Assembly (NCBI GenBank): GCA_004431415.1
Contig: QPMI01000152.1
Coordinates: 214,351 to 278,350 of the forward strand
Source: Cyanophora paradoxa CCMP329
Taxonomy: Eukaryota > Plantae > Glaucophyta
Length of the DNA stretch: 64,000 bases
Direction of reading: 5' to 3'
The position numbers and the translations under genes are program-made. The notes below the pieces were generated by a model. That model did no database searches, was not told the DNA's origin, and saw only the letters and a program-made list of their open reading frames with translations. Below are positions 43,788-50,334 of this stretch, piece by piece; within the stretch, counting starts at the first letter, position 1; each line of letters starts with the position of its first letter.

Positions 43788-44026
43788 AGCGCTGTCTCGT
43801 AGACCCTAGTTGGCTCGTCCGTGAAATTACTAATTCAGCTGGCGGCCCGGGCAGCGTTGAACCCCGCACCCGCACGCATCGGAACCGAGGGGCGCACGCG
43901 TACGAGGGTCCATGCGAAATGAAATTTCAGTTCAATTTGAAAGCGGAGCGAAGACGATAATTATAGGGCGCTGTACACATTAAAGGCTGCCGCGTTGAAA
44001 AGCCGCGAGGGAGGGGCCCGGCGGGC

Positions 44027-45805
44027 CTACAGGAGGGTGCGGGCGTGGGTGCGGGCGCCGAGGAGGCCGAGGTCGGGGTGCGTGACGACGCAGACAGGGA
44101 CCTTCTCGACGACGCCGCGGAGGCGGCCCTTGTCCAGGAACGACTTCATGAAGACGTTGTCCTTCTGCATCGCCGCAAGGTTCTTCGGCGCGATCCCGCC
44201 TGCGCGCGAGGCCCGTCAGAGGCGCTCGGGCGCGCGCGGGAGAGGGCGCGGTGGGGGCGGCACCGGCGATGAACATGCCGCCGCGGGGGATGAGGGTGAG
44301 GGCCTTGTTGCCGGCCTCGGCGCCGTAGATCTCCATGAACATCTTGACGGCCATCTCGCACAGGGCGTCCTCGCCCTTGCCGCCCTTGATGCTGATGATC
44401 GGGCTCGCGTCCTCCGCCCCCTGGATCTCCCCGTGCGTCTGCTTGTCCACCTTCTCGGGGAAGACGGTCGAGAGGTAGCTGTAGATGTCGCGCAGGCCGG
44501 CCCCCGAGACGAGGCGCTCCACGGAGACGTGCGCGTCGTCCGCGCCCAGCTTCTCCCGCATGAACTTCAGGAGCCCGTCCTGCAGCGCGTTCCGCGGGCC
44601 GAACTCCCTGCCCCCGCCCCTCAGCGCCGCCCGCCGCCCGCGCCCGCGCGCACGGCCCGCGCACGTGTGGCCGCCCTCGGAGCCCTGCGCGTGGTACTTG
44701 GAGCCGTCGTGCGTGAGGAAGACGACGCCCAGGCCCGTGCCGGCGCCGATGCAGCCGATGGCGCCGCCCTCCTTCTTCTCTCCCGCCTGCCCCGACGCGT
44801 CAGGGGCGGCGCGGCGGAGGCCAGGCGGCCGCGGGGCCGCTGCCGTACCTGGAGGACGACGACGTCCTCGGGGGTGAGGGCGGGAAGCCCGTAGCCGTTC
44901 GCCACGAAGTCGTTGATGAGGCGGACAGCGGGGATGGAGAGCCGCTTCTCCAAGTCGCGGCCGTCGATCGCCTTCTCCACCTACGCGCCCCGGGAAATAG
45001 GATCAGCGAGAGCAGCCGCGGTCGCCCCGGGGGACGCGCGCTCGCCTTCCACTCGACATTGGTCAAGAGGCACTTGTCGTCCTCGACCGGCCCAGCGACG
45101 GCGAGGCAAGCGCTCGCCGGGGAGGCATTGCCCTAGTCCAGGAGTGAGCGGCAACCGGCCCAAGCTAAGCGCTGCGCGCACGGCTTCGGCGAGGAACTCC
45201 TTGATGATGTCCACCAGAGAATCATACAGCTTGTTGCTGCGCCCGCGTCAGCCCAGGCTGCGCGGGGCGAGCGGGTTGCGCGCCTGTACGTGCGGGAAAA
45301 GATCACGCGGTCCTCGGTCGCAGACGCGAGCTGTAGCCGGCAGTTGGTACCGCCAATATCCGCCACTGGGCGGGCGGGGCGCGCGCAGCGTCAGCGCGCG
45401 AAAGGCTGCGCTATGGGGCGCGCGCGGGCGGGGGCACCGAGGATGGAGCGACCCTGGGAAGATGCGACGGGAGACATTCCCGGTGATGCTGGCTGGTTGG
45501 CGAGGCGGCCGAACGAGGGGTCCGGCAGAAACTCCGCCGTGAACGAATGAACCCCGAAGAACTGGTACCCCCCATGACCCCGCGCCGCATCTCACAGAGC
45601 GCGCCCGGCGCACCTTGCGGCGCATATTTGCAACCCAATGGAGCGAACCGTCCAGCCGCCCGCAGAAACGGGCCGCGCCGACCGAGAGGGACTTGCCCGG
45701 GCCAGCGCGACGAGCGCGCGGTACGGACAGGACCGCCTCGGCGACCGTGAGCTGATCCGCCTGGCTAGAGAGCTTGGGCGGGACGGCGGCTACGAACGCG
45801 GCCAT
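44027..45805 (-). CDS. glk: Bacterial-type glucokinase (Glk family) with a plastid transit peptide
   Basis: MAAFVAAVP... presequence; VADIGGTNCRL, AVAGPV, LINDFVANGYG, IGAGTGLG, SEGGH, SVERLVSGAGL, GGMFIAGGIAPK, FLDKGR; TAG 44027. Confidence 0.92.
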
Positions 45806-46346
45806 CGCTTGTGTCGCGCTGTGCGTACGTCAGCCGCGCCTTACGAGCCCGTCACGCCGGTGAAGCAAGGGCTTGCGCACCTAAGAACACTTCTTCTGTC
45901 TGTGAGTGACGTGGGCTGTCACGCCGCTGACTCCGCAAGTTAGACTGCAACTGCCGCGGCCGGGCTTGTCGGGCTGGACGGGTGAGCAGCGCGTCGATCC
46001 TGCTCCTATCGATGCAGCTCCGAGGTTTGAGTTCGCGCGTACGCGTGCTACTTATGCTGCTGTGAACTGGAGTCGTAGTGGAATTCGTACCCCTATTAGC
46101 ATGACTAGCTCCGATCGCTGCAGCCGAATTGCGAGTGGCTACGCAGCTGCGGCGTCGGACAAACTGTGACAGTGCCACGGCATACGTATCGGCAGGGGCG
46201 CCCGCTGAGCCCTCGTCGTGTCGCGGCTTTTAATTAGAAAAAAGAAAGAATTTCAAAATTGAAATCGCAAAAATTACTGGACTGGGGGGACATCTAGGGA
46301 GTAAAGCTGTACCGCGGTTCCTAGAGCTCGCCGCGGTACGCAGGCC

Positions 46347-49159
46347 TCAGCTCATGATGTAGTAGACGCGCGGGCCGCTGAAGCCGTTGAACTGCGGGGC
46401 GCGGGGTCAGGCCGGGCGCGAGGGCGCGGGGCCCGGCGTCCTCCAGCGGGGGGCGCACGGCGGTCTGGGAGGAGACGGTGTAGGCGCCCATGCCGGTGAA
46501 GTAGAGCCAGTCGCCGATGTTGAGCTCGGGGAGCATCACGTTCTTCGCGACGCAGTCCAGCGAGTCGCACGTCGGCCCGAAGAGCGTGCTCTGCCGCAGC
46601 TGCAGGTCCGGCCTCTTCGCCACCGGCAGCGGCGTCGGGCACGCCCCGTCGAACAGCACGCAGTTGAACGAGCCGTAGATCCCGTCGTTGATGTAGTAGA
46701 GGGTCGCCGAGGCCTTCTCGGGCCCCTCGGCGTTGTGCGCCACCTTCTTCGCGAAGATCTGCGTGCACAGCGTGAAGCTCTCCCCCGCGAAGTACCTGGC
46801 GGCCCGGCGGCGTCAGGGCGGGCGCCGACGGGGCGGGGCGAGGGGCGGCGGGCGGGGCGCACCGGCCGGGCTCGGCGATGACGCGGACGGAGGGGTCGAA
46901 GAGCTCGTCGAGGAGCGGGGCGACGCCGGCGGCGATCTCCTCGAAGGTCGGCGAGGCGACGTCCGAGGCGGGGAAGCCGCCGCCGATGTCGAGGATGGAG
47001 GGGGGGAACCCGGCCTCCTCCATCTGGTCGAAGACGGCGCGGGCCTCGCGGAGGGCGGCGCGGCGGCCCTCGACGCTGGCGCCGACGTCGACGTGGAAGG
47101 AGACGCCGACGACGCAGACGCCAAGGGCCCGGGCCGCCCTCAGGAGCCCCGGGACCTCCTCCAGCGACGCCCCGAAGCGGCTCCCCGGCTGCTTGGGCTT
47201 CAGGCCCGCCGGCGAGATCCGCAGCAGCAGCCGCGCCTCCGGGTACGACGTCCCGATCTTGTGCAGCTCCGGCTGCGCCCGGCGGCGTCGGGCGGGGGCG
47301 CGGGGCGGGGCGGGGCGGGCGGGGCGCGCGGGGCGGGCACCTCGTTGTCGAAGCAGAGGAGGGAGCAGTTGGAGGACTGGGCGAACTTGATCTGGGAGGC
47401 CATCTTGCAGGGGTTGGCGTAGAGGACGCGGGAAGGGTCGACGCCTAGGTCGAGGATGTTCACGATCTCGGCCTTGGAGGAGCACTCGAAGCCGCAGTCC
47501 AGCGCGCTCAGCGTCGCCAGCAGCGCCGGGTTCGGGTTGCACTTCACCACTGCCCGCCCCCGCCCCCTTCGTCGGCGGCGCGGCCAGAGGGACCGGGCGG
47601 GGCGGGGTGGGGCGGGGCACCGTAGAAGGGGTCGACGCGGGGCATGAGGGCCTTCCAGCGGGCGTGCTTGCGGGTGACGACGCCGAGGTCGACGAGGAAG
47701 AAGGCCTCCTCGGCGCCCTCCCGCGCGATCTTCTGCGCCACGAGGTCCGACGTCTTCGCGTCCACCGAGACCCGCTCCACCCCGTACTCCCCCACGATCC
47801 GCTCCAGCATCTCCGCGTACGTCGGGTGCGGGTGCAGCATCGCCGAGAGCGTGCGCGGCAGCAGCCGCGTCACGTGGTCGTTGATCTTGCGGATCTTGTG
47901 CTCCTTCGAGGGCTCCTTCTCCTTGAGGATGTACTTGCAGGAGAGCACCGAGTAGCAGTCCTGGAAGCGCTGCACGGTGCGGTCCTTGAGGACGAACCCG
48001 TGGAGGTCGCTGGAGAAGGCGTGGCTCAGGTCGCCGGCCGGCGAGCGGTCGTCCGCGAAGAGCGTCACGCTGAGCTTGCCCGGCTTGAACGTGTCGATGA
48101 CCCGGTTGATGAGGTCCGTGTAGTCCGGCTCCGGCAGGTTCGTCTCGAAGCTCACGTACGAGCAGTGCGACTCGGGCGTGATGTGGATCGTGTAGTACGA
48201 CTGCGCCGCCGGCCCGTCAGGCGCGAGCGATAAAAAAGGAGAGGAGGGAGCGCGCGGACCTTGCCGAAGAGGCCGTTCATGGAGTAGCCGCAGGGCTCGA
48301 AGACGTAGTCGTCGATGAGGGTGCCGGGCTTGAAGAGGGCCCCGATGCCCGAGCTCTCCGTCACCATCTTCGGCGTCACGCTGGGGTCGGTCTTGAAGAA
48401 GGCCTTCATCACCTCCGGGTCGAGGTCGCCCATCTGGATCTCCAGCTGCTGCTCGATCTCGCCCTGCTCCGGGCTCTTCGTGTAGTCCGCGATGTAAAGG
48501 TTCCAGCGGTTCCCGTTGAGCGGCCCCAGGATGTACGACGCGCCCTCGAAGTACTGGTCCAGGAACGCCACCTGCGCGCGCGCCGCGTCGGCCTCGGGAA
48601 ACAGAGGATGCTGCGGCGGCGCGGGCGGGCGCGGGCGGGCGGCGCGGGGCGCGGCTGCGCACCTCGTCATCGAAGCTCGAGTGGGGGAACGGCTGCTCGC
48701 CGGGGAAGTTGAAGTTGGAGCGGCAGAAACGGACGAACTCGACCTTGGCCCCGATCTGCCCCGCGAACTCCAGTACTTTCGGGATTGTGTTGAGCAGCAC
48801 GGTCGTCCCGCAGGTCTTCAAGATAACCTTGTGCCTGTAGACGAACAAGCTGGACTCGGACAGAACGTAGGCATCGAAGTCGTCGTTGGAGGTGCGATTC
48901 TGCGAGGCATGCTCTCGTCGGGCATGCACCGAGCGCGGGGGGCGCGCCGCGCACCAGGATCGTGCACTTGGCAAGGGTGCAGCACTCCTGCCACTGCGCC
49001 TCCGTGAATATCCGCAGCCCATCGCCGACCACACACGTGAAGTCAATCTCGAGCTTCTTCTCGGGGCCCTCGAATCCGACAACAGTCTCTGCGGAGACGC
49101 ACTCAGTCGCCCGCACTTGATCGCCCGGAGCTAACGCGCGCTGGCGGCGCACCGCTCAT
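46347..49159 (-). CDS. S-adenosylmethionine decarboxylase - ornithine decarboxylase(-like) fusion protein
   Basis: MS|ETVVGFEGPEKKLEI, YVLSESSLFV, KTCGTT, FEPCGYSMN, TIHITPE, SYVSFET (AdoMetDC). Continues in the same exon into FFLVDLG...PFY|VVKCN, YANPCK, LDIGGGF, AEPGRY, YINDGIYGSFNC, FGPTCDSLD, MGAYT, FNGF (ODC). TGA 46347. Confidence 0.95.
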
Positions 49160-49740
49160 CCGCGCCGGTGATATATCGGCAGTGCCGCGGCGGGGGGTGG
49201 AAGGTGTAGATCTGCGCCGAGCTTCTATAAGGATGAAGAATGGCGGGGCGACAGCGGCGCCCGGCGGCGCGGGTCGACCGCGGCGCTGCGCGCTGGGGCT
49301 GCGCACCTAACGATCTCGACTACGACCGCGTGGGAGCCACGCCGTGCGTTACTAACCTCAGCAAACCATAGACCGCGGCTGGGAAAAGAGGAAGGCAGGT
49401 CCTATGGGCGAACTTCGTGTACCCCAGAAGCGAGACTCCTTCAACCTGAAATTGCGGCTCGTTCCAATCCCTCTGGCCTCGTTGACTCAGCAAGCTACAA
49501 CAGCGCAACAGCAGCAAGAAGCAGCGCGGCCTCGGAGCTCGCAGGGCGTGCCAGCTTGCGGTCAGCGTTGCCCTCGCTCCCGCGCTCTGTCTGTCGCCCC
49601 AGCAAGCGCCCAACGCACCAAGGAAAGTCACAGGGGGAGCAGCAGCACCGCGCAACCCCTGAACTAGTTCTCAGCACCGGCGCGGGGCGGCAGCATCGCA
49701 CGGGTTCAGGGCTCAGCGGCCGCATTTGTAGCTACGTGGA

Positions 49741-50334
49741 ATGTCTGCACCAGAGTTCGAACAGGGCGCACCGCACGGGGGCCAGGCCGACGGCGCAGAC
49801 CGGCGGACAGCAGCGGACCACGAGGCAGAAGCCATCGCCGAGCAAGTGAACATCTCGAAGAAGAATATCCTTTACATGCTCAAGCGATGCGTGTGTTAGC
49901 CCCTTGATGCGCCTTTCCTTGACCCGCTCCCACTGTTCATCGGCGGCTTCTTCTTCCTGCCCTGGCTCTGGCTCGTCAACTGCATGTACTTCCGCCAGGC
50001 GTTGCTGTCCTCGTCGGGCAATCCCAGTGTCAAGCGATGTTCGCATCCTCCGCCTGCGCCGTGTGTTCCCCTCGACTGATTGCGCTCCCGCAGTTGTGAG
50101 GTGGAGCCTCGTCGGCTTCATCGTCGACACGATAGCGCTCATTGTCTGGCGCGCACCTCGTACGTCGGTTCTGGAGCGCGATCTGACTTCTTGGCAGGAT
50201 CGCTGTGTACCGCACCAACGAGAAAGCCCTGTCTGCAGTAAAGGTCAACCTGGACATCAATTCCTCAAGGTGCGCCAGCCCCGCCATGGCTCGGAAGGCC
50301 CCGCCTGAGCACTTCCACGCGCAGCTTCTTTTAG
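49741..50334 (+). CDS. PSENEN: Gamma-secretase subunit PEN-2
   Basis: After splicing: ...NISKKMFIGGFFFLPWLWLVNCMYFRQA...VKRFVRWSLVGFIVDTIALIVWIAVYRTN...SSSFF*, matching the PEN-2 GGF.FLP.LWLVN motif. Confidence 0.88.
49865..49933 (+). other. U12-type (minor spliceosome) AT-AC intron
   Basis: 5' site ATATCCTTT; branch TTTCCTTGAC 49914-49923; 3' site CAC. Removal restores the frame (A|TG = Met). Confidence 0.92.

Follow-up and report, generated by a model that had tools for sequence, protein, structure and literature searches.

The two rate-limiting polyamine decarboxylases, AdoMetDC and ODC, appear to be encoded as one polypeptide at a locus of the glaucophyte Cyanophora paradoxa CCMP329. This raises the questions of whether the fusion is real, where it came from, and whether both halves still act as enzymes. 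The locus lies in a window of 64,000 nucleotides (contig QPMI01000152.1, positions 214,351 to 278,350 of the forward strand), and all coordinates below are positions in this window. A first-pass annotation, made from the letters alone, had described a compact fusion, novel in an alga and either independent or ancient, that couples the supply of putrescine and dcAdoMet. Here we describe the gene, its relatives in other genomes and the state of each half. The bare fusion in an alga is not new. What is new is how broadly it occurs and how the ODC half has decayed repeatedly, with Cyanophora as a partial case.

Structure of the fusion gene

The fusion gene is located on the minus strand (49159-46347) and has nine coding exons that form a single ORF of 756 amino acids (aa). 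The introns are GT-AG and 55 to 91 nt each, and GC3 is approximately 1.0 along the entire ORF. A search with the junction region retrieved a database protein of identical sequence, P0001 (tig00000615_g2611.t1 of Cyanophora paradoxa), which then served as the query for the whole-protein searches.

The 5' leader begins with a non-coding exon (49307-49420, 5' end approximate), which an RNA contig joins to the second leader exon at 49211/49307, across an intron at 49306-49212. The second leader exon (49153-49211) has the start codon (49159) near its 3' end, so that its last seven nucleotides are coding. Scanned exon by exon, coding exons 2 to 5 match SAM_decarbox, exons 6 and 7 Orn_Arg_deC_N, and exon 8 Orn_DAP_Arg_deC. 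Exon 2 (48955-49088) encodes the AdoMetDC N-terminus with the equivalents of E8 and E11, exon 3 (48663-48899) the pyruvoyl-forming Glu/Ser site (48857-48852) and the catalytic Cys (48812), and exon 4 (48260-48571) the middle of the domain with the equivalents of F223, C226 and S229. Exon 5 (47621-48200) contains the AdoMetDC C-terminus (to approximately 47925), the linker and the ODC N-terminus. The ODC barrel is encoded by exons 6 (47341-47549) and 7 (46863-47272), and the ODC sheet domain by exon 8 (46459-46795). Exon 9 (46347-46391) carries the stop codon, and the transcript extends to approximately 46220. All of these exons are on the minus strand.

The union of both enzymes within exon 5 and its independence of exon joining, both claimed by the first-pass annotation, are borne out. 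Exon 5 is free of stops through the junction. Three studies each contributed one probable RNA run, and contigs of 2518 to 2560 nt from these runs each cover both domains as one spliced piece. These runs were taken as RNA because their contigs skip the predicted introns at CT..AC ends; none is recorded as RNA. Six of the coding introns are listed as contig joints, and run X8 implies the remaining two through the coordinates of its pieces. No letters differ in the listed pieces of these contigs, and the D88E, K169R and S200V changes discussed below are present there too. In addition, one contig of 1029 nt from a probable DNA run crosses the AdoMetDC-ODC junction, and orthologous fusions are found in two further glaucophyte transcriptomes. 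An artefact of splicing, assembly or gene prediction was therefore rejected, and its probability is negligible.

An AlphaFold model of the protein (mean pLDDT 85.8) has two confident domains separated by a low-confidence segment at residues 326 to 354. This places the true linker at approximately 30 residues (47915-47829), with the ODC N-terminal segment starting at about residue 358 (approximately 47819). The fusion is thus as compact as had been proposed, and large inserts are absent. The pTM of 0.54 suggests that the two halves of the modelled protein have no fixed mutual orientation. The modelled ODC half superposes on human ODC with an rmsd of approximately 2 Å. Searches of the PDB returned no solved full-length structure of the AdoMetDC-ODC architecture.

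The AdoMetDC half

The PF01536 match spans the whole AdoMetDC domain. All 13 processing and catalytic positions that were checked are intact (including E8, E11, C82, S229, H243, E247 and E256), and the residue check confirmed the intact pyruvoyl-forming E/S cleavage site and TCG motif seen earlier. The N-terminal half would most likely cleave itself at Glu62/Ser63 and, judging from its residues, make dcAdoMet without a need for putrescine. The human putrescine-pocket residues L13 and F111 are replaced by Lys14 (49056, exon 2) and Arg104 (48731, exon 3), so that the open pocket of the animal type is not found. In the potato enzyme, such basic residues are said in the structure paper to stand in for bound putrescine. 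The potato structure (1MHM) has Arg at the F111 position as Cyanophora does, and 126 of the 168 fusions described below have a basic residue there. The AdoMetDC half is probably putrescine-independent, or constitutive. A filled pocket of the plant type weakens the idea that putrescine drives dcAdoMet supply through the fusion.

The ODC half

The ODC half matches both PF02784 and PF00278 and has the ODC fold. We compared it with the 18 key residues tabulated in PMC5574924. Three of these are altered in Cyanophora: D88E (47487, exon 6), K169R (47179, exon 7) and S200V (exon 7, where it adjoins G199D at 47089-47084). G199D is one of three further substitutions beyond the 18, with A67V and H333G. 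Retained residues include the PLP lysine K69 (47544, exon 6), H197, the GGG loop and E274 in exon 7, D332, C360, D361, D364 and Y389 in exon 8, and R277.

Changes of this number are rare. The 18 residues are all unchanged in 141 of the 168 fusions and in 79 of the 88 standalone ODCs compared, and just one of the 88 has three changes. Among standalone ODCs K169 is invariant (91/91), G199 nearly so (90/91, with one Pro), and D88 is kept in 89 of 90 aligned. S200 is altered in all three glaucophytes (V in Cyanophora, R and G in the others), and is the only one of the 18 to differ in Gloeochaete and Cyanoptyche. Nearly all ODC halves from green and apicomplexan fusions are intact, those of the greens nearly always at 18/18.

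At the other extreme, 19 fusions that retain a full or partial ODC half, including those of Galdieria, Rhodosorus and Leptophrys, have at least six key changes. Red-algal, Leptophrys-group and several other fusions have 6 to 12 changes in the ODC half, often including K69, and an intact AdoMetDC half. P0339, P0297, P0142, P0243, P0120 and their relatives (red-algal and vampyrellid) have an ODC with K69R and as many as 11 key changes behind an intact AdoMetDC, and the ODC half of Diphylleia has D88Q, H197D and S200F. By their residues these proteins are stronger pseudoenzyme cases than Cyanophora, and the red-algal and vampyrellid ODC halves look clearly dead, yet are retained. Separately, P0184 from Mesostigma, a lone case among green-lineage fusions, has D88S and C360G; ODC activity may have been lost independently there, or the gene model may be wrong.

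The ratio of ODC to AdoMetDC divergence follows the same gradient. It is 0.71 to 0.86 where the ODC half is intact, 1.45 to 1.67 in glaucophytes, 1.85 in the vampyrellid-like group and 2.4 in the red-algal group. In the ODC tree the glaucophyte branches are short (0.36 to 0.52), and the red-algal halves have 3 to 6 changes per site. The raised glaucophyte ratio is therefore partly due to a slow AdoMetDC half, and the ODC domain remains under selection. The glaucophyte ODC halves are 55 to 60% identical over the three genera, and their changes cluster at the active site and are not scattered.

Loss of the dimer and active-site residues R277, D332 and Y389 is the pattern of the antizyme inhibitor AZIN1. 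All three are kept in Cyanophora, and its ODC domain scores 354 bits against human ODC and 295 bits against AZIN1.

Distribution of the fusions

The searches yielded 168 non-redundant AdoMetDC-ODC fusions, and AdoMetDC precedes ODC in all 165 that were classified. The carriers include the glaucophytes Cyanophora, Gloeochaete and Cyanoptyche, the red algae Galdieria and Rhodosorus, and many chlorophytes and streptophyte algae. A 77-member cluster in the ESM Atlas bearing all three Pfam domains is for the most part chlorophyte. Among land plants fusions were found in Marchantia, Riccia, Calypogeia, Selaginella, Psilotum, Ceratopteris and Adiantum. The view that these enzymes are separate in land plants, on which the first-pass annotation relied, is thus wrong for liverworts, lycophytes (Selaginella) and ferns. 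Elsewhere, fusions occur in Diphylleia (CRuMs), Leptophrys (a vampyrellid, two copies) and Cardiosporidium (Apicomplexa, P0311). Contamination by green-algal food is unlikely for Diphylleia and Leptophrys, whose entries fall outside the green clade (98% support) and in supported clades of their own. For Leptophrys it is also countered by a relative of its group that is intronless on a 17-kb genomic contig.

A Micromonas AdoMetDC-ODC fusion was reportedly described by Green et al. in 2011, and in Table 2 of PMC6356823 the ODC and SAMDC entries of Micromonas pusilla share one accession. With this precedent and fusions throughout Archaeplastida, little is left of the novelty claimed for an alga. 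Literature searches, with subscription journals mostly outside their coverage, returned no account of the fusion in bryophytes, ferns or glaucophytes, and nothing on its wider distribution or on dead ODC halves.

History of the fusion

Trees of each domain were quick and unrooted, with 54 to 89 chosen rows, and their standalone rows were biased to similarity with the query. Cardiosporidium stood for the Apicomplexa in place of Plasmodium, and seed-plant sequences were absent. The glaucophytes form one clade in the AdoMetDC tree and are split in the ODC tree only by long red-algal branches. The other fusions fall into a green, a red, a vampyrellid-like and an apicomplexan-like group, each apart from the rest, and deep nodes are weakly supported. 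The free trees do not unite all fusions in one clade. When forced to do so, the ODC tree has a p-AU of 0.14 and the AdoMetDC tree, which then scores higher, a p-AU of 0.65. An Archaeplastida clade is likewise not rejected (p-AU 0.17). A single ancient origin is permitted by these trees, neither rejected nor proven, and the same applies to a common origin with the apicomplexan and green fusions.

Of the two origins offered by the first-pass annotation, the ancient one is thus favoured without proof from the trees. The fusion goes back to at least the glaucophyte ancestor, as the data show, and probably to the ancestor of Archaeplastida or earlier. That the glaucophyte fusion arose apart from the green, red and apicomplexan fusions is unlikely in our judgement. 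The AdoMetDC trees do put glaucophytes beside standalone enzymes and not beside the greens, and the linker has no clear conservation between lineages. However, one domain order is common to all fusions, all three Archaeplastida lineages have the fusion, the basic residue at the F111 position is common to glaucophytes, Galdieria and greens, and constrained monophyly is not rejected. Comparison with the intron positions of Galdieria was uninformative: a single apparent match falls where the alignment is poor, and no match lies in the linker.

The leader peptide of plant AdoMetDC is present in gene models of Chlorokybus and Closterium. This suggests that seed plants derived their standalone AdoMetDC gene from a fused one. 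A broader scenario is speculative and, as a whole, improbable. The fusion may have arisen in an early eukaryote, at least as far back as the Archaeplastida ancestor and perhaps near the last common ancestor, an option raised by the fusions in Diphylleia, vampyrellids and apicomplexans. Fission would then have produced the unfused genes, such as those of seed plants. The ODC half would have become a pseudoenzyme for antizyme control in reds, vampyrellids, Diphylleia and, partly, glaucophytes, with Cyanophora part-way.

The leader and the flanking loci

AdoMetDC uORFs follow a penultimate-proline rule (PMC2811004). The transcripts of Gloeochaete, Cyanoptyche and three other fusions have an AUG uORF that ends Pro-Ser-stop shortly 5' of the main start, and so match this rule (L011:179-262, L013:112-195, L001:84-218, L005:320-433 and L009:336-404). 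A small uORF profile gives E-values of 0.002 for Gloeochaete and 0.16 for Cyanoptyche, and the link to known uORFs rests on this profile and the Pro-Ser end. The Pfam AdoMetDC_leader family has no match to the glaucophyte uORFs. The sole uORF of the Cyanophora leader has three codons (Met-Val-Cys-stop, 49369-49358, in the first leader exon), so that uORF control seems lost, provided that the contigs reach the true 5' end. A PPP-containing frame in this leader was considered as a remnant of the small uORF and rejected, as it lacks a start codon and has no score against the uORF profile.

Divergent from the fusion gene is a gene for PEN-2, a gamma-secretase subunit (PF10251; 49435-50480, plus strand, ORF from approximately 49746). 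Its RNA contig starts within approximately 20 nt of the 5' end of the fusion gene, which suggests a very tight bidirectional promoter. The PEN-2 intron at 49865-49933 (plus strand) is of the U12-type, AT-AC. Its minor 5' site and its branch point are canonical, and it is spliced in RNA contigs of two runs. This is evidence for a minor spliceosome in a glaucophyte. On the minus strand, downstream of the fusion gene, stretches of glucokinase-like peptide were seen by eye at approximately 43980-45370; one fragment was scanned and had no Pfam match. A separate spliced transcript covers 45700-46066.

Function of the two halves

The first-pass annotation had both rate-limiting decarboxylases at work, coupling putrescine and dcAdoMet. 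This is doubtful in view of the three key residues lost from the ODC half and the filled putrescine pocket. We put at about an even chance an inherited fusion that acts mainly as AdoMetDC, with an impaired and possibly antizyme-binding ODC domain. The ODC half would keep its fold and should still dimerise. With its PLP-phosphate loop and two other key residues altered, it would make little or no putrescine. Selection may preserve it as a tethered domain with a regulatory or structural role. The most plausible role, though speculative, is that of an antizyme-binding handle that ties the level of AdoMetDC to polyamine status. An antizyme has been published for the glaucophyte Glaucocystis, at a time when none was detected in plants (PMC1874602). 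Against impairment, D88E and K169R are conservative changes.

A fully bifunctional enzyme like that of Plasmodium, active in both halves as the first-pass annotation would have it and with the substitutions tolerated or compensated, is the less probable but leading alternative. The essential K69 and C360 are intact along with 15 of the 18 key residues, the model folds confidently on human ODC, the short branches indicate purifying selection, and the other two glaucophytes differ at a single key position. However, standalone ODCs hardly ever vary at K169, G199 or D88, and ODC activity has apparently been lost outright in related fusions. In mouse ODC, Tsirka and Coffino in 1992 reportedly found that K169R abolished or greatly cut activity.

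That the ODC half is simply decaying, or stays attached for structural reasons alone (dimerisation or stability) with no regulatory partner, is distinctly improbable. The extremely diverged red-algal halves have stayed attached all the same, and separate red-algal ODC genes appear in a published table (PMC6356823). However, the identity among glaucophyte halves and the concentration of their changes at the active site argue against it. A switch of substrate to arginine, lysine or another amino acid without loss of activity is very improbable, since D332, the residue of specificity, is kept and the substitutions affect cofactor-binding and dimer positions, although arginine-decarboxylating ODC homologues do exist (chlorovirus A207R).

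Comparison with known systems

A fusion spread over Archaeplastida and several other supergroups reopens the question of what organisation the polyamine pathway had in early eukaryotes. Fusions of 750 to 800 aa supply compact models for the AdoMetDC-ODC architecture. They also form a graded series of ODC halves, intact in greens, partly altered in glaucophytes and dead in reds and vampyrellids, in which the birth of a regulatory pseudoenzyme can be tested.

The Plasmodium enzyme has approximately 1400 aa, with AdoMetDC at the N-terminus and ODC at the C-terminus. It was described from Plasmodium falciparum as a bifunctional AdoMetDC/ODC (Muller et al. 2000, cited in PMC10216422), and PMC10216422 still treats the fusion as a peculiarity of Plasmodium. 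The Cyanophora protein has the same two domains in the same order, represented among the apicomplexans here by Cardiosporidium. It differs in its length of 756 aa, its disordered linker, its lack of large inserts and its three ODC key changes. The fusions of Micromonas and the green lineage have the same architecture, but the greens form their own clade and nearly all of them keep 18 of 18 ODC key residues, unlike Cyanophora.

The antizyme inhibitors AZIN1 and AZIN2 are inactive ODC homologues (Ivanov, Firth and Atkins 2010, cited in PMC6313458 and PMC5574924). The Cyanophora ODC half resembles them in that key residues are altered within the ODC fold and that an antizyme has been published for its lineage. 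However, it is fused to AdoMetDC, keeps R277, D332, Y389, K69 and C360, and is nearer to ODC than to AZIN1. The AdoMetDC half and the putrescine-independent potato enzyme (1MHM) both have basic residues where the human enzyme has L13 and F111. The Cyanophora half differs from the potato enzyme in being fused, in keeping position D174 acidic and the Phe of F285, and in a leader without the small uORF that ends in Pro-Ser.
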